Of a DNA stretch of 35,206 nt, positions 646 through 17,477 are shown one piece after another. The translations under genes were made by a program, and so were the position numbers. The stretch is taken from positions 186,704 to 221,909 of the forward strand of contig JAKMXF010000341.1 of assembly GCA_024704765.1 (NCBI GenBank), written 5' to 3'. The DNA comes from Oopsacas minuta (Eukaryota > Animalia > Porifera). Numbering within the stretch: the stretch's first letter is position 1; each line of letters starts with the position of its first letter. The notes below the pieces were generated by a model. It saw only the letters and a list, made by a program, of their open reading frames with translations, was not told the origin of the DNA and did not search any database.

Positions 646-675
646 GAAAGATATCTCGTTTTCATGACGAGATAC

Positions 676-3470
676 GATATTCTATAACGTGGGAAGTCGG
701 TTGATTGTACCAAACGGATGGTTTGAGACCATCAACCTACCTCCCACTGAATAGATTATGGTTAATTACCAATACTTGCCAACCTTCCTAGATCCCTGGC
801 GGATAAAGCTGAATTATTCCGAGATTTTATATCATATTCAGGGAAAATTTTGGATATTTCTAGTGAATTTTCTGACAGATTAGTGAAAAATTCATTTTAT
901 TTGCATATAACATTTTGCGAAATCCCCGATTAGGGAATAAATACAAATCCGGAAAAAGTTAGAAATTATACTTCTAACAATTCTTACATTGACTTTTTAG
1001 TGCAGCTCATATAGGCAAATCTAATAGCATGAATAATGTGCTATGTCCGTCCACGCGCTGTGCGAAATCTAGTTTTTGTCTTCAAGTCAATGTAAGAATT
1101 GTTTATTCGAATTTCCCATATATAATAATCGGATTTTACTGTGCCATAGCATAGTGGCTCAGTTCTAAAATGGTTGGTTTTCACACCCTTTGACACCTCT
1201 GTATTTTAGCCCAATCAGATTGTAGGGTTTTACAATTATGCATAAATGCATAAAATTAGTTCTGGTGGAGTGTTTGTAATTTAATTAGCACTGTAATGTA
1301 TTTGTATTGATGTAGACTGTAATTCTATCGGTCAATACATTCTATTATATATATATATACATACTGATTTATCATATAATTAATCATATTTTCACACCTT
1401 TTGATGAACATTTCAAAATTATCCTAGAGATTAGCTTCCACTTGTTAAATAGGAGTAAACAGGGATTTTTGGCTATCCAAGGTTCCCTAAACGGGCGTAC
1501 ATAGTGATCCAAAAATCCGATCACACCAGCAGCAAGGAGCAAATTATAAGATTGTATTACCCATCCTAATTACATTCAAACGCCTTCTGTGGTGAAACTG
1601 GAGATGCGATTTCGCTTTTGGGTCGCTTTACAACACTTTCTGAGTTGTTTTAATGCTTGAATGTATCCTACCACCACAAATTCCTGGATCCGCCACTGGA
1701 AACGACACTATTCTATTGGTCGGATATATTTTCTAGTGGCAGTTAACTGGCAAACCGGCGGTTTACCGAACCTAGCCCTGCCCAGCTGAAAGTTTATATC
1801 CATTTAGAGATCTCTATTTAGAATGTGTTTATATTCCTACTTTCTGTCAAGATGTTTGTTCCTGATACTCATCTCTATAATCTTCTGGCCAACATCTCTC
1901 ACACAGTGTAACACTGAGTTACCTGATAACTCTAAAGTTATACTGGATTCTAATACTTATCATACAGTAGATAGTGGTGGGGTAATACAACCTGAAACTT
2001 TAGGATGGGGCAATGTTCAAGTAGATAGTATAGTATATACTATTGGTACTTCATCTAATACTTTTGATGATAATTTAGGCTGGCGACCAGCTATATTAAA
2101 GACAGGTTCATGTGGACCTGAATACGAATCTTGCTTTCAATCAACACGTGTACTTTATGCATCAGTGGATATAGAAGGAGAAATGAACTGGCTAGTTAGT
2201 AGTTATTATCAGACATTAGCTAATGCTATTTTCATCAGAATTACTTGTGAAAGAAATACAAATTATGAAACAGATTGTCTTAAAACATTTCAAATATTCT
2301 ACTACGAGTCTGACACGAATATAATTCTAACAGAATCTCTCCTCTCTCAATTCCTGCTTGCTGATAATTCTACTAATCAGCTGATGGAAGGAGGAGGAGT
2401 TGTAGTAGCTTCATTCCCAAGATCTAAGAATGGATTCTATATAGGATTATTGAATCAGAATCCTTGTGCTGATCTCACTGAGTTCCTTTTCTACTACTAT
2501 GAGTGTCCTGCTACAAATTCTACTTCTGGTATCTACTCTGTATCTGCTATGCTATCTCCTAGTCCAGCTGATGAAGTTATCCATGTTAATATTACCAATG
2601 TTAGCTGTATTCTCCCGTTTGTGAACAGAGACCCTCTTAATCTGAGAGCAGAATGCTACTGGAACGGTACATGGAGTCTGCCTGAAGAGGATTTGTGTGT
2701 TTGTATGTCAGGTTACTACATGTTGACAGACAGCAGCAGTAGCAGCATTATATCGTGTGTTTTGTGTCCTTATAAGAGCAATACAGGTGGAGATATAGGA
2801 GCTGTTGAGTGCTCGTGTGAAGATGACTGGTATAGAGGAGAGGGAGAGAGCGTGAGTGAGAGTTGTGGACAGAGTCCTTCTGCTGTTGAGAATGTTCGTG
2901 TGGATATATCAACTAGTCCTTTGGAGATGACAGTTGAGTGGGATATTCCTGTGTATTTGGGGAATCGTAATGAGAATCAGCTGCACTACATTGTGAGTTA
3001 TTATGAGGTTGTATCTCCAGAGAGTAAGAAGGAGATAATGAATTTGAAAGAGAGACAGTTAGTACTGAGTGATGTATCAGAGAGTACAGAGTATGTTATT
3101 ATAGTGACGTCATTGAATGGAGTGAGTTCAGTGTCTGATGTGTATAACAGAGTTAATATAACTGTGTTGTCTTCTTTTCCAGATATTGATTCTATCAGTT
3201 ACAACAGTGGTATTCTGGAATGGAGCTACACTTTGTATGGCCAGAGAGAATATGTGTTTGAATTGAGTTACTTTTTTGTAGAAGATGATACAACTTGTGT
3301 ATTACACGTGAACAGTAGTGAGTGTGAGTGTACAGGAGGTTACACCTGTGTGTGTACTGTGAATGTTACTGATTTGGATTCTTCTAAATCAATCAGTTTT
3401 CAATTATTCTCTGATAATTCAGGTATATTAATCGCTACTAATCTTAGTTATACAATTAATCTCTCAGATA
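676..3470 (+). repeat. Tandem duplication copy 1 (upstream region plus Eph ectodomain)
   Basis: Collinear blocks shared with 7866-11403: ~676-965/7866-8135, ~1073-1120/8237-8285, ~1125-1180/8587-8657, ~1386-1460/8661-8735, ~1641-1660/9076-9096, and a near-identical ~1664-3470/9603-11403. Confidence 0.9.
1664..1698. mobile_element. Transposon terminus relic (hAT-like TIR, reverse complement CAGTGGCGGATCCAGGAATTT)
   Basis: AAATTCCTGGATCCGCCACTG ends at 1698, 124 bp upstream of the Eph ATG. The same terminus occurs at 9636. A CAG-starting GC-rich end is typical of hAT-like TIRs. No partner end or TSD found. Confidence 0.5.
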
Positions 3471-4825
3471 CACCTACACCTCAACCAACTGATATTACTC
3501 TAGTCCTGGTGATAACAATTGGAGTTGTTTTGATTGTAATAATTGTATTTATTATTGTAAGTATCATTCTCTTCTTTTTGATTTTCTTCTGTTCTCGCAG
3601 TATAATCGTTCGTTCAAAATTAAGTCATAAAGACACTCCGCTGATGGAGTCAGAAGCTCAAACCCCTGCCCAAATACTGCATGACCAATTGTACCAAGAT
3701 CCTAGTCATTTTGAGGTTCTCAATAAGGCTATTCGGACCTTCACCAAAGAGCTAGATCAGAGGGATATCGATGTAGCCTCTGTGATTGGTAATGGTGAAT
3801 TCGGAGATGTTTGTAAGGGGACTCTCAGAATTAACAACAGAATCGTTCCAGTAGCAATAAAAACTCTCAAAGTTTCTTCCAGTGAGAAGAACAAGGAAGA
3901 TTTCTTCAAAGAGGCCTCTATAATGGGACAGTTTTCCCATGAGAATGTGATCTATTTATACGGAGTAACTCTCTCTAAACCTGTAATGATAGTAACTCCT
4001 TTTATGGAGAATGGTTCTTTGGACAAATTCCTAACCACCAACTCTGAAACCCTGAATTTATTTGATTTAGGCAAGATTTGTCTTGGGGTAGCTAAAGGCA
4101 TGAATTATCTCTCTAATGTAGGCTATGTACATCGTGACTTAGCAGCTCGTAATATCTTAATTGATTCAGACTTTACTCCAAAGATAGCTGATTTTGGATT
4201 GTCTCGGATAACACATGAAAACGTGTATGACGTGAAATCAGGCGGGAAGATTCCTGTCAGATGGACTGCACCAGAAGCAATTCTATATCGTAAGTTTAAC
4301 ATGGCTTCTGATGTGTGGAGTTTTGGTGTTTTGATGTGGGAGGTTATGAGCCGTGGACAGATTCCTTATGGAGATGTTGACAATTACACATTACTGGAGC
4401 AGATACAACAAGGATACAGATTACCACAGCCAGAAGGATGTCCTTACATGTTACACGCCCTTATGATCAGATGCTGGGATACAGTACCAGAGATCAGACC
4501 TACTTTCTCAGAGCTTCATTGTGAAATCTCTGAAATGGTTGACAATAACTTTAATCCTAGACCGAGGAGTCGCTTTTCCAAATCATTCGCTCATAGTCCT
4601 CTTGACTTCACTTCTATTGAGGATTGGCTAACTTCTCTCAAGTTGGAGCGCTACGCTACTAACTTCACCAAGAATGGATTTGCTAACTTATCGAGTGTAT
4701 GGCATATGTCAGAGCATGATCTCCTAGCTATTGATATCATACCTGTAGGTCATAGGAACAAGATAATGACCAGTATACATAAAGCTAATAACAAGCTATC
4801 TCGTACTTACTCAGTACGTGTGTGA
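1823..4825 (+). CDS. Eph: Eph receptor tyrosine kinase, 1000 aa, single exon
   Basis: Signal peptide. Eph ligand-binding motifs NWLVSSYY, CLKTFQIFYYESD and SKNGFYIG..C....FYYYECP. Cys-rich sushi/EGF-like region, FN3 and a divergent second FN3-like unit, TM. Juxtamembrane YQDP..NKAIRTFTKELD. Kinase motifs GNGEFGDV, VAIK, HRDLAARN, DFG, IPVRWTAPE, SDVWSFG. SAM domain (SIEDWL..GHRNKIMTSI). C-terminal YSVRV. Confidence 0.96.
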   Translation: MCLYSYFLSRCLFLILISIIFWPTSLTQCNTELPDNSKVILDSNTYHTVDSGGVIQPETLGWGNVQVDSIVYTIGTSSNTFDDNLGWRPAILKTGSCGPEYESCFQSTRVLYASVDIEGEMNWLVSSYYQTLANAIFIRITCERNTNYETDCLKTFQIFYYESDTNIILTESLLSQFLLADNSTNQLMEGGGVVVASFPRSKNGFYIGLLNQNPCADLTEFLFYYYECPATNSTSGIYSVSAMLSPSPADEVIHVNITNVSCILPFVNRDPLNLRAECYWNGTWSLPEEDLCVCMSGYYMLTDSSSSSIISCVLCPYKSNTGGDIGAVECSCEDDWYRGEGESVSESCGQSPSAVENVRVDISTSPLEMTVEWDIPVYLGNRNENQLHYIVSYYEVVSPESKKEIMNLKERQLVLSDVSESTEYVIIVTSLNGVSSVSDVYNRVNITVLSSFPDIDSISYNSGILEWSYTLYGQREYVFELSYFFVEDDTTCVLHVNSSECECTGGYTCVCTVNVTDLDSSKSISFQLFSDNSGILIATNLSYTINLSDTPTPQPTDITLVLVITIGVVLIVIIVFIIVSIILFFLIFFCSRSIIVRSKLSHKDTPLMESEAQTPAQILHDQLYQDPSHFEVLNKAIRTFTKELDQRDIDVASVIGNGEFGDVCKGTLRINNRIVPVAIKTLKVSSSEKNKEDFFKEASIMGQFSHENVIYLYGVTLSKPVMIVTPFMENGSLDKFLTTNSETLNLFDLGKICLGVAKGMNYLSNVGYVHRDLAARNILIDSDFTPKIADFGLSRITHENVYDVKSGGKIPVRWTAPEAILYRKFNMASDVWSFGVLMWEVMSRGQIPYGDVDNYTLLEQIQQGYRLPQPEGCPYMLHALMIRCWDTVPEIRPTFSELHCEISEMVDNNFNPRPRSRFSKSFAHSPLDFTSIEDWLTSLKLERYATNFTKNGFANLSSVWHMSEHDLLAIDIIPVGHRNKIMTSIHKANNKLSRTYSVRV

Positions 4826-6299
4826 ACTGTTATAATTATAGATTTATATATTGTGACTTGCTTTTTATAGCCTCGAGTTTGAATTTGTTTACTATTTTTG
4901 ATTATTTGTAGATATTGTTGACATTATTTATTAATACACGAGTTGTTTATATTACATGCTCTAATGTGCTTTTTGAACTGTGTATATGCTTGAGTATTCG
5001 AGTAATATGTATAATTGTATATTCTGTTATGTTAGAGTGAGTAAGTCATCAAACCTGTATTTTCAGTCGGTGTGTGGCTGGGTCACAAAAATACATTTCC
5101 AGGAAAACTTAGAATTACACTAGACAAAGGTTAATAGCCTTACTTCGGGGGTTATTTTGGTCAGATTATGCTGAGTAAAAGTGATGGCATGATTATACAT
5201 AACTTATATGTGAAAACGCCGTATGATGGTAATTGCAACTCATTGGCTGTTAAGCAATGCTTTCCATAACTGTATGATTTCGAAAACATTAGAAACGTTA
5301 TTTTTGGTGTATTTAATTGTTAACGGAAGATTATTGCCTACTACTTTTACAACACAATTATTTTTCGGAACAAAACTGATTAAAGCAAAATCTTAAAAGG
5401 GATCAGCATGTACTGTACTGAAGCTATAGACACATTATTGAATAATATTTCATCCCAACTATAGAACACTGATTATAAGTCAAATATACTGTATTTATTT
5501 TCATATTCGATCATTACAGAATATCATTTAGCAGTATGCATTATTTGCATCTTTCAAATTCACTTATAACTATTTGAGATGAATTATGTATCCATGGAAT
5601 CCCTAGAAATCAATTTGTTTCTGGACATTATAATCTCAACAAGGTCTTGCCTCCCTAATTACCCATTTAGTAAAAGCTCCAGGAAGCTAGGTCTGAGATA
5701 TCGCCGTCGCCGTAAGCGTAGGCGAGGCGAGAAAAGAAAGGTAAAGGAATGGAAACAAGAGTTTCATCAGATAATTCAATTACTTTTATTCAATTTGCAT
5801 ATTTGTTTTAATGGACAATGCTCCAAACAGTGCAAGTATTATTGCAATTGCAATACAAACTGAGTAGAGATTCGTTTGTCTATTTATCTTATCCACTTTA
5901 TATATATCGACATATGTACATCCTTGAAGGCGTCAGCCACCGAAATTATATTGTGAGATCAGCAAAAGAAGACTTAATGAAATATTTTATTACCCGCATG
6001 ATATAGGACAACTATGAGAATGTATTACGAAATTTTATGCTTTTGGTTTCAAGATATACTGAAAGAATATAGACTTACTGACTTATGGTATGTGACTAAT
6101 TCATTTTCTAGAATAAATTTTAGAGAATATGAACAAAATCCCTAAATATGTAGTGTGAAGCAAAGTGAAACCGTTCGAACCGTATACTCGGTTTAGAAAA
6201 TTATTACTATACATTAATCGAGGGACTCAGTGCCTAGATGAATATCGAACCTAGCATTGAAGCACACTAGCTATTTAATAATCTGTCTAGTTTTGAACC

Positions 6300-6354
6300 A
6301 AATAATTATCGCATACACCACCAAAACCTTTGGTGATGTATGCGATAATTATTT
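6300..6354. repeat. Foldback hairpin, 26-bp stem, 3-nt loop
   Basis: AAATAATTATCGCATACACCACCAAA - ACC - TTTGGTGATGTATGCGATAATTATTT, with one mismatch. Confidence 0.85.
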
Positions 6355-7327
6355 AGGGAAAACAGGGTTATTATTATTAGTTGTGTACAGTGTAAGTCAT
6401 TGTGCTTTATAGTTTTGTATAACAGACATATCAGGGGCAATGGGAGCAGTTATTAGCAACAAGCATTGATCCTGATTTATATTACAGTGATCGAGTCCAG
6501 TCTATTCAAATGAACAGGCCAAGGCAAAAAGTGATGAGACCATGGCCTCGCAATCCTGGCCATTTACGCTAACTTCCTTCCCGATTCAAGCAATCGTGTA
6601 TATAAAGAACTTTCTGCTAAATTTATTACAAATTCTTCTACTGAATCTGGTCTCAAAATATTGCTAACCGAGAATTCAACGAATACATTATTTTCTTGAA
6701 TATTTTCTACACAAAATCATATTACTAAATATGTTTCAATCCAACTACACATCTGAATAATAGTATATAGACCCTAGGTGTAACTAGGAATCATAGAGCA
6801 AGGAGGCAAGTATGAATATTTCCTCAATAAAATGTAGATTACAATAGTGAGATGAGGCAATGGGTGAAAGGCGAGGAAGCAAATGCCTCTTCTGAATAAA
6901 TACTAATTTCCTCCTTTTCCAAAATTCAGACCGTAAAACATAATGGACGTGATTTTTATCATGTCCTTTGAAATTTTAGTGTATTTTGGTAATAGCTTGA
7001 TAAAAATGTCCCCCTATAATACGAGATAACAGACGAACAACAATGTTCATTAGGAGAATGTATTCTATATCATAGCACGAGTTTATGTATCCACACAGTG
7101 ATTCATTTCAATTTTCAAAGCTTTAAAGTTCAAATTTAATAAAGAACTTTAGATCCATTTTGGGATAATTATTAAACCCACTTTATAACAAGTTATCGAT
7201 CATTTAATACTTTCACGAATTATCTACAATTTGCAATAGACTTGTTTCATATTGTTAACATATAGATCTCCTGAGTCATTAGTCTGTTGGAATATATTGA
7301 CTTATGTTCTGATTGCTTAGTCTAAAC

Positions 7328-7791
7328 CAGCGGTCGGCAACTGGCGGCCCGCGGGACAAATTCGGCCAGCAAAAACATTTTCATGGCCCGCCGAAGAATG
7401 GGCTACAACCTTATTATATTACCATAATTTTCTACTTACGTATATATTCATTGATAGCATTAGAAATCTGCTCATAACTTTCATAAATTTTCCAACACAA
7501 AAATATTCCTACCCAGATACTCCTTTTCATTACCTACTTTTTTTATTTGTTATACAATTTTTTTCATTAGATTACGAAACGATTAAGCTCCATCACTATC
7601 CTGTCCATTCGTAGTAGTAGCAGCAAGAAAAGAAAATTGACTCTGAATAGATACATCAATTCCTTCAAGGACTTTTGTAGACTTAGTGGATATTCACCAT
7701 ATATGTACATCAACAAATAGTCATCTAGTGGCCAGCACATCTATGAAAAGAGTTTATATGGCCTGCACTCAAATAAAGTTGCCGACCCCTG
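7328..7791. mobile_element. Non-autonomous hAT (Charlie/SPIN-like) MITE, 464 bp
   Basis: 14-bp TIRs CAGCGGTCGGCAAC / GTTGCCGACCCCTG (1 mismatch). Perfect 8-bp TSD GTCTAAAC at 7320-7327 and 7792-7799. Subterminal GGCCCGC motifs. No transposase ORF. Confidence 0.93.
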
Positions 7792-7865
7792 GTCTAAACT
7801 GTCTTATCCAATTCAACATATCCCTGTACACTTATGGTATAATTATAGTAGCAATATTTGTGTAA

Positions 7866-10800
7866 GATATCCTATAACGTCGGAAGTCGGTTGATTGTAC
7901 CAAACGGATGGTTTGAGACTATCAACCGACCTCCCACTGAATAGATTATGGTTAATTAACCATACTTGCCAACCTTCCCGGATCTCTGAATCCAGGGATA
8001 TATTGGATATTTCTAGCAAATTTCTGACAAATTAGTGAAAAATTCATTTTATTTGCATATAAAATTAGAAATCTCCAGAATTTTTACAATCCCATGATTC
8101 CGAGGTATACACCTATCCAGAGAATAGTTAGAATTTAGGAACGGATGGTAAGTATGGTCACCATCGAGCGATTTATCTCTTAGGATTAATCATAAGATGT
8201 AGGGAATATACTAATTAATGCAGTTGTAATCGGGTTTTTTGTTGTCAAGTCAATGTAAGAATTGTTTATTCGAAATTCTTATATAAGGCCATGTAAAGTA
8301 ATATACTTGTTTCTCATCCCCACCCGCCCCAAATTTTATCCCCCGTCCGGAAAGATTTTATTTATATTTTTCCAAATTATGGATAATTCTTTGGCCACAG
8401 AGTGTGCAATCCACATTTACTAGTTGTATAGTTGAAAAATTCAATATTTTTAGTGCCCAGAGAGAATGTGACGAGATAATCGAAGGGTCAAAATATTTTA
8501 TATATTAACTGACCTATAAATAATACCGTGGCAGTTTCCGAAGAAATTCCGGATGAGAAACAAGTAATTAATTCTACATGGTCTAAAATAATCGGATTTT
8601 ACTGTGCAGGCTAATAAACTAGTACTTAGTATAGTGGCTCAGTTCTAAAATGGTTGACTGTATATTTTCACACCTTTTGGTGAACATTTCACAATTTTCC
8701 TAGAAATTAGCTTCCACTTATAAATAGGATAAACAGTGACGTAGGATTTGACATTTTAATGTCTAACAAGATTAGTAAAATTCAATTTCATCTTTCATTG
8801 CTAAAATGGATATTTAGTAAAATAATATAGTTTCAATAATCCATAAAATTTATTTGGTAATATTTAAGTCGGCACAGACGGCGATTTGAGATTTTTTCTT
8901 GTTTACGAACTGATCACTATATTTTCAATTAACAATCTTCACAACACAAAATTCACCGAGGCGTAGTCAAAGAATTACAGGTACATTATTAACCATTTTC
9001 ACAAATTATACTTCATAAAGTAGAGTTTATGATTAAAGTGATATATCTGACCATGAAACAGCTATTCCGTATTTCTGAGTCGTTTTAATGCTTGATATGC
9101 ATGTATATAACTAATCATACGTCAGTGAGAATGCAAGATGCACCCAAAGGGTGCCACCCGAGAAATGTCCACGTACCCCCAGCGTGAGTAAGCGAAGCTT
9201 GCTTGTATGAGTGATTTTTCAAAATACTGGATTAGTACATGCCTCAATTACTAGTAAATCTAACTTAATATACGTAGGGTTTAGTATCGAAACCATTATA
9301 GAAATCTTCCCATTGTATTTCATTTTAGAGAATTAAGTGTTTGATCTTCATTTATACTCAACATTTCCACTTAACTTGTACATGTATGCAACATATTCAT
9401 ATTTACAACTGTCAGCATAGCTAATCGAAAATTTTTCCGAATGAAACGTGTATTACACAGCTAAGCGAACTTATTTCGAGATTCGAAGCTATTTGACGGT
9501 ATAGAAATACTTATGTTTTAGCAATTATAGCTGATCGTGCAGGGAGAGCTCTGGACCCCATTGGGGAGTTACAGCGCCTCCCAGACACACAATTGGATGA
9601 TTATCCTACCTCCACAAATTCCTGGATCCGCCACTGGAAACGACACTATTCTATTGGTCGGATATATTTTCTAGTGGCAGTTAACTAGCAAAAGCGGTGG
9701 TTTACCGAACCTAGCCCTGTCCAGCTGAAAGTTTATATCCATTTAGAGATCTCTATTTAGAATGTGTTTATATTCCTACTTTCTGTCAAGATGTTTGTTC
9801 CTGATACTCATCTCTATAATCTTCTGGCCAACATCTCTCACACAGTGTAACACTGAGTTACCTGATAACTCTAAAGTTATACTGGATTCTAATACTTATC
9901 ATACAGTAGATACTGGTGGGGTAATACTACCTGAAACTTTAGGATGGGGCAATGTTCAAGTAGATAGTATAGTATATACTGTTGGTACTTCATCTAATAC
10001 TTTTGATGATAATTTAGGCTGGCGACCAGCTATATTAAAGACAGGTTCATGTGGACCTGAATACGAATCTTGCTTTCAATCAACACATGTACCTTATGCA
10101 TCAGTGGATATAGAAGGAGAAATGAACTGGCTAGTTAGTAGTTATTATCAGACATTAGCTAATGCTATTTTCATCAGAATTACTTGTGAAAGATATAGAA
10201 ATTATGAAACAGATTGTCTTAAAACATTTCAAATATTCTACTACGAGTCTGATACGAATATAATTCTAACAGAATCTCTCCTCTCTCAATTCCTGCTTGC
10301 TGATAATACTACTAATCAGCTGATGGAAGGAGGAGGAGGAGTTGTAGTAGCTTCATTCCCAAGATCTAAGAATGGATTCTATATAGGATTCTTGAATCAG
10401 AATCCTTGTGCACTTCTCACTGAGTTCCTTTTCTACTGCTTTGAGTGTCCTGCTACAAATTCTACTTCTGGTATCTACTCTGTATCTGCTGTGCTATCTC
10501 CTAGTCCAGCTGATGAAGTTATCCATGTTAATGTTAGCTGTATTCTCCCCTTTGTGAACAGAGACCCTCTTAATCTGAGAGCAGAATGCTACTGGAACGG
10601 TACATGGAGTCTGCCTGAAGAGGATTTGTGTGTTTGTATGTCAGGTTACTACATGTTGACAGACAGCAGCAGTAGCAGCATTATATCGTGTGTTTTGTGT
10701 CCTTATAAGAGCAATACAGGTGGAGATATAGGAGCTGTTGAGTGCTCGTGTGAAGATGACTGGTATAGAGGAGAGGGAGAGAGCGTGAGTGAGAGTTGTG

Positions 10801-11403
10801 GACAGAGTCCTTCTGCTGTTGAGAATGTTCGTGTAGATATATCAACTACTCCTTTGGAGATGACAGTTGAGTGGGATATACCTGTGTATTTGGGGAATCG
10901 TAATGAGAATCAGCTGCACTACATTGTGAGTTATTATGAAGTTGTATCTCCAGAGAGTAAGAAGGAGATAATGAATTTGATAGAGAGACAGTTAGTATTG
11001 AGTAATGTATCAGAGAGTACAGAGTATGTTATTATAGTGACATCATTAAATGGAGTTAGTTCAGTGTCTGATGTGTATAACAGAGTTAATATAACTGTGT
11101 TATCTTCTTTTCCAGATTTTGATTCTATCAGTTACAACAGTGGTATTCTGGAATGGAGCTACACTCTGTATGGCCAGAGAGAATATGTGTTTGAATTGAG
11201 TTACTTTTCTGTAGAAAATGATACAACTTGTGTATTACACGTGAACAGTAGTGAGTGTGAGTGTACAGGCGGTTACACCTGTGTGTGTACTGTGAATGTT
11301 ACTGATTTGGATTCTTCTAAATCAATGAGTTTTCAATTATTCTCTGATAATTCAGGTACATTAATTGCTACTAATCTTAGTTATTCAACTAATCTCTCTA
11401 ATA
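7866..11403 (+). repeat. Tandem duplication copy 2 (upstream region plus Eph ectodomain)
   Basis: Collinear with 676-3470, with extra sequence between blocks (e.g. ~9097-9602). Similarity ends abruptly just after AATCTCTC at 11398/3465. Confidence 0.9.
9545..9636. mobile_element. Transposon end relic (same terminus as 1698, longer subterminal part)
   Basis: GC-rich GGACCCCATTGGGGAGTTACAGCGCCTCCCAGAC followed by CCTGGATCCGCCACTG, resembling invertebrate hAT-like MITE ends. Family assignment not verified. Confidence 0.5.
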
Positions 11404-11549
11404 CTTTTCCTATTCCCTCTGTTCAGTACACAATTGCAACGATTTTATTGGTATTTATTGGTATTTCTTACTTTTTGTTTGTGTTTTCTCTGACAGCTTT
11501 TATTATTGTTTATTTACTATTTTGGATGTTTAAGAAATGTATAACTTGA
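9762..11549 (+). CDS. Kinase-less Eph paralog (ectodomain + TM + 5-aa tail), 595 aa
   Basis: Intact ORF, about 95% identical to residues 1-550 of the upstream Eph. Then an unrelated ~35-aa hydrophobic stretch and KKCIT*. No kinase or SAM sequence between 11549 and CDC27. Confidence 0.9.
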   Translation: MCLYSYFLSRCLFLILISIIFWPTSLTQCNTELPDNSKVILDSNTYHTVDTGGVILPETLGWGNVQVDSIVYTVGTSSNTFDDNLGWRPAILKTGSCGPEYESCFQSTHVPYASVDIEGEMNWLVSSYYQTLANAIFIRITCERYRNYETDCLKTFQIFYYESDTNIILTESLLSQFLLADNTTNQLMEGGGGVVVASFPRSKNGFYIGFLNQNPCALLTEFLFYCFECPATNSTSGIYSVSAVLSPSPADEVIHVNVSCILPFVNRDPLNLRAECYWNGTWSLPEEDLCVCMSGYYMLTDSSSSSIISCVLCPYKSNTGGDIGAVECSCEDDWYRGEGESVSESCGQSPSAVENVRVDISTTPLEMTVEWDIPVYLGNRNENQLHYIVSYYEVVSPESKKEIMNLIERQLVLSNVSESTEYVIIVTSLNGVSSVSDVYNRVNITVLSSFPDFDSISYNSGILEWSYTLYGQREYVFELSYFSVENDTTCVLHVNSSECECTGGYTCVCTVNVTDLDSSKSMSFQLFSDNSGTLIATNLSYSTNLSNTFPIPSVQYTIATILLVFIGISYFLFVFSLTAFIIVYLLFWMFKKCIT

Positions 11550-12000
11550 ATTGTTCTCAGACTGTCTTTATTGTGTTTTATAGTTTTACTAACTTGTGAA
11601 ACTGAATTATGTTTGGAGAATATTTGTTTGTTAATTTATCATCGATATGATATTATTTTGAAGAAATTTTTTTATAATATTATTGTTATTGTTTGTTTGT
11701 AATAATGAATTTTCACCACATAGTTGTCAACTTTGTAGACATATATCCGGGAGATTTCCTTAGTAACAGTTGAATTTCGCAAGTTTTTGATGTGAGATGG
11801 ATGGCTGATAGGAATTCTACCCACCCTAGTAGCGTATAAATGTCTAGCCTATTTTTCCTAAAAATCAAAATTGATGACATAGGCACTAGTAGATAATTCA
11901 TCCCTGCTTAATGGACCCTATTTCATGGCTTATTTGGCCAATATATGTTGACATTGCTAATGACTAAAATACATTTCCACTAGTATATACGTGATACGTA

Positions 12001-12083
12001 CCAAATTTCCCTGATTGAGCGCGCTGGGGTATTCACCCGCACGAAATATATGAGCACCAGGGTGCTTTTTCAGGGAAATAGGG
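12001..12083. mobile_element. 83-bp Tc1/mariner-type MITE
   Basis: TA|CCAAATTTCCCTGA ... TCAGGGAAATAGGG|TA: 14-bp TIRs with 2 mismatches, flanked by TA. Lies 67 bp upstream of the CDC27 ATG. Confidence 0.65.
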
Positions 12084-12150
12084 TATAGTACATAAACATA
12101 TGCACATTGATTTACTAATTTACTTGTATTCATAGTGTCTACTGTATTTT

Positions 12151-14751
12151 ATGCTATTCAGTATTCAAGAACCTGTATCAGGTGCTATATGGCATCTACT
12201 CAATCACTACTGTATAGAAGATGCTATCTTCTTAGCTGAAAGGTTACATGCTGAGGTTTGTTCAGAAGAGAGCTCATTCCTTCTAGCAACCTCTTACTTC
12301 AGAGATGGACAGATTATCCACGCTATACACACTCTAGAAAAACTAAAGTGCCCGACGAATATGAAATGTAGAATATTATTAGCTCGCTGCTGCCTAGAGC
12401 AGAAGGAGTACAGAAGAGTACAGCATATCCTGTTAGGTAATTCTGAGATATCTAATGAACAGGTACCTCGTGTGTATCAAAATGATGCAGGTGTTGTATT
12501 CTGGCTAATAGGTGAGTCTCTGAGACGGTGTAATCTTCCTGCAGAATCTAAAGAGTATTTCCTACTAAGTCTGAGGTATAACCCTTATATGTGGTCCTCA
12601 CTACACGCATTATGCGAGATAGGATGCCGAATACAACTAGACCATATATATACAGTGAATAATATTCCTGTGTTTTATAACGAAGCTCCATTTATGGCTA
12701 TATCCCGTGCTTACCATCCATCTGAGTACTGTGATAGGATGGATATACAGGAACAGCAAGTACTGGTGCAGGCCCCTAAACCAAAGATCCGTGTACCTCC
12801 TATTCCTCTCCAACAGTGTACAGATATAACAAGAGTAACTAGGAAGACTAATCTTAGCAAAGTATGCATGAAATTATCATTTGATTCAGCTGCTTATGCA
12901 GAGAAGAAAGTACCTAAAAAAAGCACTATAGACTCTACAGTAGGATCTCCTGCTACTCCTACATTTGGTACTCTACCTATGCTCACTACTCCTGGCTGTG
13001 AGCAGGATCCCGGGATATTAGAGAGGAGTGGTAACGTGTCCTGGTTATTCCAACAGTTAAAAGACACCCATCTGTTTTCCTCATACAAGACACCCTCTCC
13101 TCAGCCATTCTCTAGAGAGAGTAGTCTCTCAAAAGCTCCAGTCATCTCCAAGGAGTATTTCACCGCATACAAACAACCTTCTAATATGATCAGGTCCCTC
13201 CTTGCTCCTGACTCTGTTCAGAATCTGAACTTTGTGAGTCCAGGCCCTCTTCCCCCCAGAATAACTCGTAAGAGAGGTACCCGCTACCTAGCAGCTACAG
13301 CTGAGGACTCTGAACCTAGGAGCAAGATCAGAAGACAAGACCCTATCTGTATAGATAGTAGTAAACCAGAGAGACCTGTAACCCGATCCTTTCTCAGACA
13401 GGAACCCTTGTCCTCAAGCTCCTCTCAAGCTCCTACCCCGCCCCTTGCTGTCCGTACAGATTCTAAACTACCTGTGCCATCTAAACTACACACCAGAATT
13501 CGTAGAGATAAACCTACAGAATCTAAGACACAGAGTAAACTCACTCAATCAATATCTAATATAAATATCTGTCAGCCCTCTCCTGCAGCAGACTCTCCTG
13601 TCCCTGCTGGTGATACATCTACCCTACTTGATTCTACACAAACAGAAGAGTTCAATTCTGCACTTAAGTCTAGTATACAGTCAGTAGTGAATCTATTACT
13701 ACAGCTAGCTACTGCATACACACATCTGTTTAAATTCGAATTGTCATCTGCTGTCTCTGCTTTCGAAGAACTCCCAGATAACCAATTCCAGACTCCCTGG
13801 GTATTGTGTCAGCTCGCTAAGGCGCATTTTGAGCAGGCAAACTACCAGACAGCCTGCGACCTGTTTGAGGATGTCCGTACCCTAGATTTTGATCACGTCA
13901 CAGATATGGATATATACTCCACAGCTCTCTGGCATTTACAGAAGGACGTAGAGCTGTCTGCTCTCTCAGAGGAGTTAGCTAACTCATGGCAACAATCCCC
14001 TCAGGCATATTGTGCTAGAGGCAATTGTCTCAGTCTGAATAAGGAGCATGAAGATGCTATTAAGTTATTCAAACGTGCAACACAGCTTGCACCTAGATTT
14101 GTGTACGCATATACCCTGTTAGGACACGAGTACCTGTGTACAGAGGATCTATCTAATGCTAAGAAGAGCTTCCGCACAGCTGCTACTATCAACCCGAGAC
14201 ACTACAATGCTTTCTTTGGACTAGGGATGATATCACTGAGAGAGGAGAACTTCCAAATGGCAGAAATACACTTCAATAAAGCTCACATGATTAACCCCAG
14301 CAGTTGTATAATTTGTAGTAGATTAGCTAAAGTTAAGCATTCTCTCCGTCGATCCTCTGAGGCTCTGACCTACCTGGAGAGAGCTCGTAAGCTGGACCCT
14401 AAGAGCCCGGTCCCTCTCTACCATAAAGCTAGTATCCTCCTGGATCTGAACAGACCACAAGAAGCCCTGGATATCTTAGAGGGCCTCACTAAGATGGTCC
14501 CCCGAGAGGCTCTGGTCCACTTCCTTATGGGTAAGGTGTATCAGAAGCTGGGAAAGAGGTATGAGGCTAAACTCAAATATTCCTGGGCTCTGTCTATTGA
14601 TCCTAATAACAGGGAGATTAGAGATGCTCAGAATAGTCTCAATCAGCCCTGTTCTAACCATGACGAGGGTACACCTCCTAACTCAGGATTTGATATATTT
14701 ATTGATCCTATGCCAGAAGCTCCTACCCCAGATGAGAACAATCATTCTTAA
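12151..14751 (+). CDS. CDC27: Anaphase-promoting complex subunit 3 (CDC27), 866 aa, single exon
   Basis: N-terminus IQEPVSGAIWHLLNHY..DAIFLAERLHAEV.SEES.FLLA matches CDC27. Long S/P-rich linker. C-terminal TPR array (YSTALWHLQKD, GNCLSLNKEHEDAIKLFKRA, YAYTLLGHEY, RHYNAFFGLG). Confidence 0.96.
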   Translation: MLFSIQEPVSGAIWHLLNHYCIEDAIFLAERLHAEVCSEESSFLLATSYFRDGQIIHAIHTLEKLKCPTNMKCRILLARCCLEQKEYRRVQHILLGNSEISNEQVPRVYQNDAGVVFWLIGESLRRCNLPAESKEYFLLSLRYNPYMWSSLHALCEIGCRIQLDHIYTVNNIPVFYNEAPFMAISRAYHPSEYCDRMDIQEQQVLVQAPKPKIRVPPIPLQQCTDITRVTRKTNLSKVCMKLSFDSAAYAEKKVPKKSTIDSTVGSPATPTFGTLPMLTTPGCEQDPGILERSGNVSWLFQQLKDTHLFSSYKTPSPQPFSRESSLSKAPVISKEYFTAYKQPSNMIRSLLAPDSVQNLNFVSPGPLPPRITRKRGTRYLAATAEDSEPRSKIRRQDPICIDSSKPERPVTRSFLRQEPLSSSSSQAPTPPLAVRTDSKLPVPSKLHTRIRRDKPTESKTQSKLTQSISNINICQPSPAADSPVPAGDTSTLLDSTQTEEFNSALKSSIQSVVNLLLQLATAYTHLFKFELSSAVSAFEELPDNQFQTPWVLCQLAKAHFEQANYQTACDLFEDVRTLDFDHVTDMDIYSTALWHLQKDVELSALSEELANSWQQSPQAYCARGNCLSLNKEHEDAIKLFKRATQLAPRFVYAYTLLGHEYLCTEDLSNAKKSFRTAATINPRHYNAFFGLGMISLREENFQMAEIHFNKAHMINPSSCIICSRLAKVKHSLRRSSEALTYLERARKLDPKSPVPLYHKASILLDLNRPQEALDILEGLTKMVPREALVHFLMGKVYQKLGKRYEAKLKYSWALSIDPNNREIRDAQNSLNQPCSNHDEGTPPNSGFDIFIDPMPEAPTPDENNHS

Positions 14752-14848
14752 CACTTAATTAGTTCTCTAACTACTATTCCTGTATGGTTTATTGCTGTGA
14801 TAATCTAATTAAGAGATGATTATTACATAATATTGTTAAAATAATTTA

Positions 14849-14965
14849 CAGCAAGCTCTTGCTATAACGAAGTGCTGGGACTCAGATTCCATTTCGTTAT
14901 ATGTGGAGTAAAATTAATTACTTTCACCCTACAGGGGTCCGACTGATCATAACGGGAGTTTACTA
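14849..14965. mobile_element. Degenerate Tc1/mariner-type MITE
   Basis: Left CAGCAAGCTCTTGCTATAAC versus reverse complement of right end TAGTAAACTCCCGTTATG; several mismatches. Confidence 0.35.
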
Positions 14966-15295
14966 CAGTGGGTCCTCTCTAATTGTCAACTTGTTCATTC
15001 GTTTTTATCTGTTAGAATCTGTAATTGTCCATAGGGTTCTCTAATTGTCCACTTCGAACCTCAAATGTAGACTTTTCTAATCAGAAAGATTTTGTGCTAA
15101 TTCCTCTACTCAATGAAAGGCTTGATTTACTGGTTGGATCATTTCTTATAAATGTAAATGATAACTAAAGCATGAAAACCTCTACACGTTGTGTTTGTAA
15201 CAAATACAATCCCTGTTAGACAAGAGGATACTTTTGAACATTTCATTGAGTAGTGGAAATGCACTGATCCTTATGAATCTTGTATTATCAACTAG

Positions 15296-15877
15296 ATGGC
15301 TACCCCTTCTAATATTTTGCTACTAACCCTGAGGCCCAGGGTATTATTCTGGGTACCAGGATATTCACAGAGATGGCTGTCCTCTCCTAAACCTAAATCT
15401 CGTCGTCAACCTGCTAAACTAGACAAAGAAAAGAATATAAGATTACAAAAGAAATTTCAAGTTGCTGAGTATAAGAAGCAGTTACAAGATGAAGCAAAGA
15501 AGGTACATTGTATGAAAATAGCACTCAGGGGAGAAGCTCTGGACCCAGAGGCTCTCAATCCAATCAGAAAACGTCCCCTTAAGGTATACACCCCAGAAGA
15601 GATTGACCAGCAGATTACTATAAAGAAGGAATGGTCTTCTTACAAGAACAGGCAATCTGCTGAAACTTTTCGTCAACTTAATAACCTTCTTAAAAGCAGA
15701 ATAAAGGCTATGAGGGAGTTGAAGAAAGCTTCTCCAGCTTTATACGAGGCAACACTGAGAGCAGATCCAGAAGCTTGTCTCCCTATAGAGATAGATCCTA
15801 TACCTGAGTATCCTGCTAGGGAGGGGTATGAGGCACCTGAGCCTTATGATAAACTATTCCCTGACAAGAAAACCTAA
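15296..15877 (+). CDS. MRPL40: Mitochondrial ribosomal protein mL40, 193 aa
   Basis: Basic/hydroxylated presequence-like N-terminus. EWSSYK..Q..AMRELKKASPALYEA..D..P...P.YP..GYEAP matches the mL40 family pattern. Confidence 0.82.
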   Translation: MATPSNILLLTLRPRVLFWVPGYSQRWLSSPKPKSRRQPAKLDKEKNIRLQKKFQVAEYKKQLQDEAKKVHCMKIALRGEALDPEALNPIRKRPLKVYTPEEIDQQITIKKEWSSYKNRQSAETFRQLNNLLKSRIKAMRELKKASPALYEATLRADPEACLPIEIDPIPEYPAREGYEAPEPYDKLFPDKKT

Positions 15878-17477
15878 GCAAATAACCTTAACTAAGATTA
15901 ATGACTGATTTAATTTCTGTAAAATTATCACTTCATAAGTAGTTTTTTGAATTTATTTGCATTAAATTTTAATGAATTAACCACTGTAATATTACCTCCT
16001 CTTCTAACACGTGTAGAACTGTAGATATTGTGTGGAGTATGTTAATGAATTTATTAAGATAATTCAATCTATTACAAATACAATTACAGCAAATCATTCA
16101 GCACTGTTAATCTCAGAATTTATTGGTTTCCCTTTATTAATGAAGTTTCGTGTTTAATTAATAGCTACTGGAATTATATAATTAATCATTAATGCAAACA
16201 AGTAGCATAATGAAGGAATCCTTATTTTACACTGTTCTTGTTGAAACTTGGTTAGTGCTAGTTTTGTTGCAAATCAGGTTTTACATGTCTCACTATATGC
16301 AATGCCTCTGTTAATTGTAAATTACATATAACAGCTAGGCAGGATGTAGTTGTAGATATTACATAATAGAATTGTTAATAATAATTCGTATTAGTTCTTT
16401 GAAGTAGCATACAGCTTACTGATGCATGGTGTGTTACATAGTCATGCCCATATACACACGCCATACGAACCTGTTAGCTATCAGCTGTGTAATATGATTA
16501 TTATCCTATTCATCTGGCTCTCAACCAGAAACCACTATTCTGCTCTTTGTGTGTATCCTCTTGATCTCATTGTAGAGCTACAATAATGAAATGGTTTATG
16601 TCACACTGTATTATTCCCTTTGATATTATTTGATAATTCTAATCATTATATTGTTATATTATCTCACACGATCTGTGTCAAAGATATCTGGCACACTTCG
16701 TGATATGTAGTCGAACTGTAATTAATTGTCAAATAATTACAACAAAAGTCTTGTGGGATATAAAATATATATTTAATCCCTCAGTATTTGGAACTTTGTT
16801 ATCAGATAAGTCCAATCAAGTTAACACAGGTGTATCTATTCTAAAAGAATAGATATGACTCATGGTGAAATTTCAGTGATGGCGATGTTGTCTATATATT
16901 GGATAAGATGAATAATTCCGCGATTTATCTCAGGTTTCTAATTATTGTCCTGAAATAGGCTTTATTCTTGTCTTACCTTTGATATTGATATTGTTAAAAT
17001 ATGTCCGCCCCATGTATCAATATTTATATAAACCTTTCTCCTGAGATTTGAAATATGTCCGTGTTATATACTGTTTTTCAATTTATAAATAATTGCAATT
17101 ATTACTATATAGCTCGTTAATTGAATTGTGTATATATATTCTCACTAGATTCCTATTATGGTAACTTCAATCAAATGTTATACAATCTTATTTCATTTGA
17201 ACTCTCCAATAATTTGTGTATTCTCATTCCACAAAATTGTCTTACAACAGTATTTCGCTATTGCACGTTATTGCCGGTAGTAGTAATGATTATGTGTGCG
17301 TTACAGCTGACGCAGGCGTAAGGTCACTACTCAATTCGAATTAGTTGCATATTGCCTTAGATCTAACTTTATTAGGTGCTGTAGCTTGTATTGCAGTCTT
17401 TATATTATATTTATACACGAATTCAGTCCACTTTTTCAAGTAGTATGTATTTTAGTTTTGATTTATAAAATTATAAA

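Follow-up and report, generated by a model that had tools for sequence, protein, structure and literature searches.

A tyrosine kinase Eph receptor gene and its kinase-less neighbour in Oopsacas minuta form a pair whose extracellular halves have been kept alike by gene conversion, and the kinase-less member belongs to an old family of glass sponges, as was shown by comparison of genes within and between assemblies. Both genes lie in the window, i.e., the stretch of 35,206 nucleotides analyzed here, to which all positions refer unless a contig is named (Table 1). Hereafter, K designates an Eph gene with a kinase and S an Eph gene without one; copy 1 is the K member of the pair and copy 2 the S member.

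Table 1. Coordinates of the features discussed in the text.
Feature	Positions	Strand	Description
Copy 1 upstream flank	673..1462	+	Collinear blocks, 90.8% to copy 2 flank; older duplication trace
Homogenized tract, copy 1 side	1664..3465	+	159 nt leader and codons 1-548 (signal peptide, LBD, Cys-rich, two FN3)
Copy 1	1823..4825	+	Eph receptor tyrosine kinase, full-length, 1000 aa
Kinase-type-specific part, copy 1	3466..4825	+	Stalk end, TM, juxtamembrane region, kinase, SAM, PDZ-type C-terminus
Kinase, copy 1	about 3773-4525	+	
SAM, copy 1	about 4604-4783	+	
Copy 2 upstream flank	7863..8736	+	Counterpart of 673-1462, 90.8%
Dispersed repeat, ~310 bp	8283..8590	.	Inserted in copy 2 upstream flank
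Homogenized tract, copy 2 side	9602..11398	+	DNA homology to copy 1
Copy 2	9762..11549	+	Eph-ectodomain membrane protein without kinase, 595 aa
S-type stalk end, TM helix (LLVFIGISYFLFVFSLTAFIIVYLLFW), short basic tail (KKCIT)	11399..11549	+	Conserved tail family
Short 3' flank common to C43 copy	11550..11586	+	
ANAPC3/CDC27	12151-14751	+	Synteny anchor
MRP-L28	15296-15877	+	Synteny anchor

A previous sequence-only reading had described a signalling-competent Eph receptor next to an intact, kinase-less, membrane-anchored twin, and both open reading frames (ORFs) are as it described them, with 1000 and 595 aa. Copy 1 matches the Pfam families PK_Tyr (8.5e-91), SAM_1 (4.4e-13), EphA2_TM (29.8 bits, cut-off 28.9), Ephrin_lbd (1.6e-5) and fn3. 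Its kinase is intact, with the VAIK, HRD, and DFG motifs all present; the EphA2_TM match, which is above the cut-off, corresponds to an Eph-type transmembrane (TM) helix and juxtamembrane region, and the protein terminates after the SAM domain in VRV, a PDZ-type C-terminus. Another tandem kinase gene is located upstream (contig C341:178210-181314). The same reading had assumed an intronless genome, which does not agree with the 1.59 introns per gene of O. minuta (PMC10280926); the Eph genes studied here are single ORFs.

Copy 2, a separate locus 4.9 kb downstream that has a 5' region of its own, shares the 5' leader, the signal peptide, and the ectodomain of copy 1, and has a TM helix that is different and conserved. 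An ephrin-binding domain (Eph LBD) was identified in the two copies, with Ephrin_lbd E-values of 1.6e-5 and 2.5e-5 and scores of 25.5 and 24.9 bits that are under the curated cut-off of 27, and phmmer against the PDB retrieved Eph ectodomains only (EphB2 7s7k, 1.5e-14; EphA4; EphA2), in alignments that start at the LBD and reach into FN3. The fn3 match is at the cut-off (25.0 bits) and the alignment with the EphB2 ectodomain spans the Cys-rich region and FN3, which is consistent with a Cys-rich region followed by two FN3 domains, the second of them predicted from length and conservation. Past the breakpoint, copy 2 consists of ~33 hydrophobic residues followed by KKCIT and a stop. Pfam searches found no EphA2_TM match in it; the ORF, which ends five residues past the TM, has no kinase domain, SAM domain, or PDZ-binding end, and no kinase coding sequence is present within the 600 bp between its stop and the next gene. 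Two alternative roles of the tail were rejected: (i) a di-lysine ER-retrieval signal, the lysines of KKCIT being away from the canonical -3/-4 positions, and (ii) a GPI signal, the basic residues being conserved after the ~33-residue hydrophobic stretch, an arrangement to which a TM anchor appears better suited.

The sequence-only reading had considered the TM of copy 2 to be new. However, judging from its relatives, this TM and its tail are old. About 11 kinase-less proteins of 593-635 aa share them; these proteins come from four or more further assemblies, which are deeply diverged and probably those of other glass sponges; further S matches beyond four ENA assemblies were counted with no assembly assigned. 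In O. minuta itself, a third copy with the same tail and the same stop is carried by another contig, C43. A profile constructed from the foreign tails only gave 39.8 bits for copy 2 and 45.2 bits for the C43 copy, compared with at most 5.5 bits for all K-type TMs and at most 8.5 bits for 200 shuffles. The same profile reached at most 7.4 bits in all frames of 3301-9600, and a derivation of the tail from the kinase gene, as a piece that is frameshifted or lies downstream, was thereby rejected. That the foreign tails are contaminants from O. minuta is excluded by an identity of 44-61%. The S proteins have a common layout (signal peptide, Eph LBD, Cys-rich region, two FN3, a TM helix carrying the family signature IG-x-S-x-x-LF, and 5-15 residues of cytosolic tail). 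The survey for other kinase-less Eph genes that had been suggested thus yielded, in addition to these proteins and the C43 copy, a second S lineage on contig C330, whose tail is unrelated to the copy 2 family and which otherwise follows the same pattern. Several S genes are present per genome, in two separate tail families; no disabled gene was found among those seen, all of their ORFs being intact, and the DNA downstream of the S genes examined contains no kinase exon. In public annotation, S copies are labeled "Eph receptor B2b isoform X1" and "TYRO3-like."

In a tree of ectodomains, the sister of each S is a K of its own genome; such K/S pairings number about nine and come from five or more genomes, and 11 changes of the K/S label are required. 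The AU test rejected S monophyly (delta lnL 2833, p 1e-54) for an S group that was defined after the tree had been seen. Since each S groups with a K of its own genome and S monophyly is rejected, in conflict with the tail family, these comparisons show that S and K ectodomains have been homogenized by recurrent gene conversion. For the ectodomain, identity is 0.89 inside K/S pairs and 0.54 between S of different clades; the corresponding TM values are 0.31 and 0.35. A K partner is present in the same genome as each S, and in the pairs with positions read it is on the same contig, at 5-85 kb. In the pair separated by 85 kb, DNA identity is 95.8% over 1885 bp and the tract starts at -155; the C330 pair has 96.5% identity and a pair in assembly L023 94.1%. 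The conversion tract, which in two of four tracts read begins about 155 nt 5' of the ATG, ends shortly before the TM. It has been overwritten repeatedly between partners, and the ectodomains are therefore ~90-97% identical in DNA, whereas the TM and cytoplasmic parts of the partners have stayed unrelated.

Copies 1 and 2 have a tract of this type, with 96.9% identity over 1806 bp (43 mismatches), which begins 159 nt 5' of both ATGs and stops at codon 548, with no detectable homology beyond. The previously noted sharing of signal peptide, LBD, Cys-rich, and FN3 regions with in-frame indels only was borne out: copy 2 has gained 3 nt (an extra Gly) and lost 9 nt (ITN), and no other coding indels separate it from copy 1.

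With regard to function, we consider it moderately probable, for the hypothesis as a whole, that this old S family, its ectodomain converted with that of a K partner, serves to tune or dampen K signalling. In the proposed mechanism, S would be located in the same membrane as K, with which it shares a 5' leader, and would bind whatever K binds. It would then enter K clusters via the Eph clustering contacts of its ectodomain and contribute no kinase, so that forward signalling from K-S clusters would be tuned or dampened and adhesion favored, as with the spliced EphA7-T1 of mice. Matched ectodomains would be what makes S an effective partner. A role of S as decoy or modulator is suggested here by analogy with known receptors.

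It has also to be considered that S signals itself, either because its TM, with Ser, Pro, and aromatic residues, recruits a membrane partner, in the way that adaptors are recruited by activating members of vertebrate paired receptors, or because S, like a ligand, presents an Eph ectodomain for reverse signalling in adjacent tissue. This alternative, which we regard as unlikely, would account for a TM signature conserved beyond the needs of a plain anchor, and conversion of the ectodomain follows the pattern known from paired receptors (PMC6288428). However, the TM of copy 2 has no charged residue, its five-residue tail contains neither a signalling motif nor a tyrosine motif, and no adaptor was identified. 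Ephrins of hexactinellids have been reported (PMC6485061); the six-frame genome search for ephrin (PF00812) returned no match, and its controls matched nowhere either.

Copy 2 is very probably functional, because conservation of the S class extends to deeply diverged assemblies. In copy 2 and the C43 copy, all five indel events are in frame, and the copy 2 branch, with 8 synonymous and 11 nonsynonymous changes, has an omega of ~0.38 (p 0.035). Variants in read-derived contigs leave the CDS without stop or frameshift, and single-base indels occur in the flanks. Constraint on the ectodomain nevertheless appears weak, since omega among recent paralogs is 0.4-1.0, with 0.9 on the C43 branch. Between copies 1 and 2, nonsynonymous and synonymous changes number 13/2 in the LBD vs. 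9/12 elsewhere (p 0.014). As a general feature, positive selection concentrated in the LBD was rejected because the pooled p for the two K/S pairs tested is 0.15, the excess being absent from the other pair; comparisons of C43 with copies 1 and 2, and of S with S, show it only weakly and without significance.

The one RNA-like run, X3, covers ANAPC3 at a depth of 680-1340 and the spacer 11496-12133 at 0-8. Its ectodomain coverage, in assembled contigs, mixes paralogs and is not assignable to one copy. At 11487 and 11531, in the S-specific tail, X3 has no coverage, where assembled contigs prove presence and not absence. An exact-protein contig look-up for the copy 2 and C43 proteins found nothing on record.

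The omega values of recent copies, the C43 branch in particular, and a copy 2 tail transcript not seen in X3, within what contigs can prove, would be compatible with S genes that are functionless passengers, their ectodomain ORFs open only through overwriting by selected K partners, and conversion from a selected K could indeed keep an ectodomain open without selection on S. We consider this improbable. The TM and tail are outside the tracts, yet their sequence, length, and stop position are conserved over a divergence at which ANAPC3 is 61% identical in protein at the syntenic locus; ANAPC3/CDC27 and MRP-L28 establish that the copy 1 locus is orthologous to a K-type Eph locus in assembly L027, and this identity gauges the depth of the divergence. 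The number of S genes, several in each genome and divided between two tail families, with none seen to be disabled, also speaks against it.

The two genes had also been credited with a shared promoter. This is correct for the noncoding 159 nt of the tract (5 mismatches, about 97%) but not beyond, where there are only collinear blocks of 90.8% identity, broken in copy 2 by a ~310-bp repeat that is represented in the genome by 445 or more candidate copies and has raised depth in all read runs. These blocks (33 mismatches per 358 aligned nt) are more diverged than the neutral sites of the tract (p 0.002). The near-identity, previously understood as the plain trace of a recent duplication, is thus attributed to gene conversion between long-separate gene types. 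A fresh truncation, in which copy 2 would have arisen from copy 1 by a recent, incomplete tandem duplication with loss of the 3' half and would run by chance into unrelated DNA that supplies a new TM, as a nascent decoy or a young pseudogene, would explain the high ectodomain identity to the neighbor, the abrupt end of homology at 3465/11398, and the distance of only ~600 bp from the copy 2 stop to the next gene. However, it is very improbable, as the tail and stop recur on C43 and in deeply diverged assemblies and the flank divergence (9%) is older than the tract divergence (3%).

The DNA of the copy 2 tail was found only at the copy 2 locus and on C43, where the tail segment is at 42236-42430. 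Homology of C43 to copy 2 is limited to the segment from -37 of the ATG through +37 past the stop, and the flanks of C43 bear no relation to those of the window. Such a span fits an mRNA-sized unit, as in a retrocopy; neither a poly(A) tract nor a target-site duplication was seen. The C43 copy is also a mosaic, its first ~170 nt being 96% identical to the upstream tandem kinase gene and ~88% to copies 1 and 2.

The copy 2 locus also withstood the artefact check. Read-derived contigs from three DNA-like runs, which were produced in the study that also yielded the assembly, span the breakpoint (11329-11563), link the copy 2 tail to the next gene (11534-12440), and tie the start codon to the unique DNA that precedes it (9213-9857); because they bridge its junctions, the locus is not an assembly artefact. 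That alleles of a single gene were mis-assembled into the two or three copies, as the high similarity of these copies, the short C43 contig (54 kb), and the position of the window at a contig end might suggest, has a negligible probability given these bridged junctions, the unrelated C43 flanks, and the orthologous arrangements in other assemblies.

Eph receptors are among the oldest cell-contact signals of animals. The S genes constitute a conserved, separately encoded class of kinase-less Eph in an early-branching animal, whose recognition half evolves in concert with the K partner. If S acts as proposed, receptor modulation by a matched kinase-less twin would prove to be ancient and capable of being hard-wired in the genome, and a "paired receptor" architecture maintained by gene conversion would not be an invention of vertebrate immunity. 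The gene pairs can be used to study the strength of Eph signals in a syncytial animal, and annotators should be aware of the names that S copies bear in public annotation. More generally, it may tentatively be hypothesized that glass sponges apply a genome-wide paired-receptor logic, for Eph with two independent S lineages, in which each kinase receptor has a kinase-less partner with a recognition surface matched by gene conversion. This logic could provide tunable or counter-balancing recognition, perhaps in tissue fusion, self/non-self discrimination, or syncytium boundaries, and would have arisen independently of vertebrate immune paired receptors. Nothing tested gave any indication of an immune or recognition role.

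The S proteins resemble EphA7-T1/T2 and TrkB-T1, which are membrane-anchored, have the ectodomain of the full-length receptor, and have no kinase. EphA7-T1 binds full-length EphA7 and reduces its phosphorylation (PMC7717530), and by analogy sponge S would be expected to act likewise, forming heteromers with the full-length receptor, lowering its phosphorylation, and shifting the response from repulsion toward adhesion. However, the vertebrate forms are splice products of one gene with an identical TM, whereas sponge S is encoded separately by an old gene and has a conserved TM of its own; ectodomain identity is due to shared exons in the EphA7 and TrkB isoforms and to gene conversion in the sponge pairs. 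EphA10 and EphB6 are also Eph paralogs that are unable to phosphorylate and that modulate active Ephs, as S may do by analogy, but they retain a full pseudokinase and SAM, while S lacks the whole cytoplasmic region, and they have been traced only to jawed vertebrates (PMC6993872). In sponge transcriptomes, partial Eph models without intracellular domains were treated as incomplete (Krishnan et al., 2019, PMC6485061); in contrast, the genomic S ORFs end in a conserved TM and stop, with no downstream kinase exon.

An architectural parallel is found in the Siglec-5/14 and Siglec-11/16 gene pairs, which also combine near-identical ectodomains with different TM and cytoplasmic parts and undergo concerted evolution by gene conversion (PMC6288428). 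Two features of paired receptors are thus found in the sponge genes: similar ectodomains joined to different TM and cytoplasmic parts, and a similarity kept by recurrent gene conversion. KIR, LILR, and SIRP are also paired immune receptors of vertebrates. The modules differ, since the vertebrate pairs oppose an ITIM to a charged TM residue that recruits the ITAM adaptor DAP12, an opposition not found in the sponge pair, which instead sets a tyrosine kinase and SAM domain against an uncharged TM with a five-residue tail.

At the end of contig C341 of the 61.5 Mb assembly, the window carries two tandem Eph receptor genes, one kinase-bearing (K, copy 1) and one kinase-less (S, copy 2). Copy 1 has a signal peptide, a weak Ephrin_lbd match, fn3 and EphA2_TM matches, a strong tyrosine-kinase domain, VAIK/HRD/DFG motifs, a SAM domain and VRV at its C-terminus, and the solved structures closest to copy 2 are all Eph ectodomains (top EphB2 7s7k, 1.5e-14). 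The two copies are homologous in DNA (1664-3465 and 9602-11398, 96.9% identity; one +3 and one -9 indel) and show no relatedness past codon 548; copy 2 ends in a hydrophobic helix of ~33 residues followed by KKCIT. Farther upstream of both copies lie collinear blocks of 90.8% identity, and the repeat interrupting them in copy 2 has 445 or more candidate copies genome-wide (77-92% identity). Every junction of copy 2 is bridged by read-derived contigs from three DNA-like runs, which contradicts a possible assembly artefact. ORFs, domain matches, DNA homology and bridged junctions thus confirm the pairing observed in the sequence-only reading. The third tandem gene of the contig has an N-terminus like those of copies 1 and 2 and, when the ends are compared, the C-terminal VRV of copy 1.

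Coordinates of the Eph genes and the dispersed repeat (C341, C43 and C330, contigs of the glass sponge Oopsacas minuta; L numbers, locus handles; positions with no contig name are those of the window)
Feature	Coordinates	Size	Description
Copy 1	1823-4825	1000 aa ORF	K-type Eph
Copy 2	9762-11549	595 aa ORF	Ectodomain matches only
Dispersed repeat	8283-8590	~310 bp	SINE- or MITE-like; interrupts collinear blocks in copy 2's upstream flank
Third tandem gene	C341:178210-181314 (L015:1507-4611)	1034-aa open frame	~5.4-8.5 kb upstream of the window
C43 copy	C43:40605-42387 (L003:1501-3282)	593 aa	Kinase-less, dispersed; named 'Eph receptor B2b isoform X1' in the annotation
C330 Eph cluster	C330:122948-148085 (L005, L006, L007)		Two kinase genes and one kinase-less gene

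The TM and tail of copy 2, previously taken as new, are shared with other genes. A whole-genome search identified the C43 copy, an ORF that shares copy 2's TM and KKCIT tail, and no further occurrence of this tail DNA in the genome. This copy is not a haplotig, because its homology to copy 2 is confined to the stretch between -37 of the ATG and +37 beyond the stop, and the flanks are unrelated. This stretch is an mRNA-sized unit; no poly(A) trace was seen. In other ENA assemblies, a protein search with copy 2 retrieved K proteins of ~1000 aa and S proteins of ~593-635 aa (44-61% identity), the latter ending in a TM and tail of the same kind. A profile built from these foreign S tails, with the O. 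minuta sequences left out, scored 39.8 bits on copy 2 and 45.2 bits on the C43 copy, compared with at most 5.5 bits for all K-type TMs and at most 8.5 bits for 200 shuffled versions of copy 2's tail; it had no match in any reading frame of the 3' half of copy 1 and the spacer. No kinase coding sequence was found downstream, on the same strand, of any short gene examined. One foreign assembly contains a syntenic locus (L027) with a kinase Eph followed by ANAPC3, MRP-L28 and myosin; its ANAPC3 protein is 61% identical to that of the window, and the two lineages are therefore deeply separated. Window 12151-23921 and L027:16510-23126 share, downstream of the kinase Eph, the order ANAPC3, MRP-L28 and a very long ORF (myosin in that assembly). 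Three foreign assemblies have an EF-hand gene ahead of the kinase Eph.

A second S lineage is represented by the C330 cluster, whose S gene (623-aa ORF, 'TYRO3-like' in the annotation) carries another tail, scoring -1.7 bits against the first profile and conserved in two foreign short proteins (motif FLSSLILxLLYFxP). One foreign short protein of this type is 87.9% identical to a K protein of its own contig and only 71% to the other short protein.

The ectodomains have a different history. In their tree, each S is sister to a K; of the ~9 pairings of this kind, O. minuta contributes two, and one foreign genome likewise has two separate ones. Enforcing S monophyly cost 2833 log-likelihood units (AU p 1e-54); the effect is very large, though the group was named post hoc, with the tree already seen. 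K/S partners share a mean identity of 0.89 over the ectodomain and 0.31 over the TM, whereas between clades S-S identity is 0.54 and 0.35, respectively, and S-K identity in the TM is 0.21. The tracts of near-identical DNA are sharply bounded: one (95.8% over 1885 bp) begins at -155 and stops shortly ahead of the TM in genes 85 kb apart, the C330 pair of O. minuta, 20 kb apart, shares 96.5% over 1623 bp, and a tandem K/S pair at locus L023 shares 94.1%. Neutral sites of the window tract (159 noncoding nt plus synonymous sites) differ at 20 of 511 positions, against 33 of 358 in the older flank blocks (p 0.002), and are thus the less diverged. The first ~170 nt of the C43 copy are 96% identical to the upstream tandem kinase gene and only ~88% to copies 1 and 2; judged by these identities, they are a second mosaic tract. 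As read from the sequences, a tail of single old origin can be reconciled with species- and locus-specific ectodomains only if K and S genes have repeatedly undergone gene conversion or an equivalent form of recombination with each other.

When C43 serves as third taxon, synonymous and nonsynonymous changes number 8 and 11 on the copy 2 branch (omega ~0.38; neutrality test p 0.035), 7 and 12 on the copy 1 branch, and 11 and 36 on the C43 branch (omega ~0.9). Each of the five indel events of the two S copies leaves the reading frame intact, and read-derived contig variants include no stop or frameshift in the copy 2 CDS, while its flanks do show single-base indels. These patterns point to a modest constraint on the ectodomain, part of which could be accounted for by gene conversion; conservation of the tail, outside the tracts, is the stronger argument for S function. 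At window 11487, where the assembly reads T, all three DNA-like runs have C; this difference, due to polymorphism or to an error in the assembly, changes Ser576 to Pro (S576P) in the kinase-less TM; Pro is the residue of the C43 copy and of several foreign kinase-less tails. Between copies 1 and 2, the ligand-binding domain (1934-2500 vs 9873-10436) differs by 13 nonsynonymous and 2 synonymous changes, compared with 9 and 12 elsewhere (p 0.014), a clustering that does not recur in the second K/S pair tested and is weak in paralog comparisons.

Expression across the window was assessed with contig-level data. Depth of the RNA-like run X3 is near zero in the spacer and rises sharply 17 nt ahead of the ANAPC3 start codon. 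Over 8793-9776, unique DNA leading into the copy 2 start codon (~970 nt), it is moderate (~123, against 0-8 in the downstream spacer), which points to either a long leader or transcription reading through from the repeat region. Depth is high on the ectodomain, where the signal mixes paralogs, and X3 gives no contig-level coverage of the S-specific tail at 11487 and 11531.

Since leader, signal peptide and ectodomain are common to S and K, S should arrive in the same membrane as K, bind K's partners and join Eph clusters via ectodomain contacts while adding no kinase, and its presence there would set signal strength or favor adhesion. S is probably a modulator of K signaling, by analogy with mouse EphA7-T1, which binds the full-length form and reduces its phosphorylation (PMC7717530). 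Ser, Pro and aromatic residues are conserved in the S TM, which leaves room for an alternative role in partner recruitment.

The premise that O. minuta has an intronless genome fails, because its genome paper, in which Ephs are not discussed, reports 1.59 introns per gene (PMC10280926). Partial Eph models in sponges were earlier treated as incomplete (PMC6485061), and kinase-dead Ephs have been traced to jawed vertebrates only (PMC6993872). Truncated RTK isoforms are the functional analogue of the sponge S proteins. Although the opposing ITIM/adaptor modules of vertebrate paired receptors are absent from the sponge K/S pairs, the evolutionary architecture is the same, as in Siglec-5/14, whose ectodomains undergo concerted evolution by gene conversion (PMC6288428).
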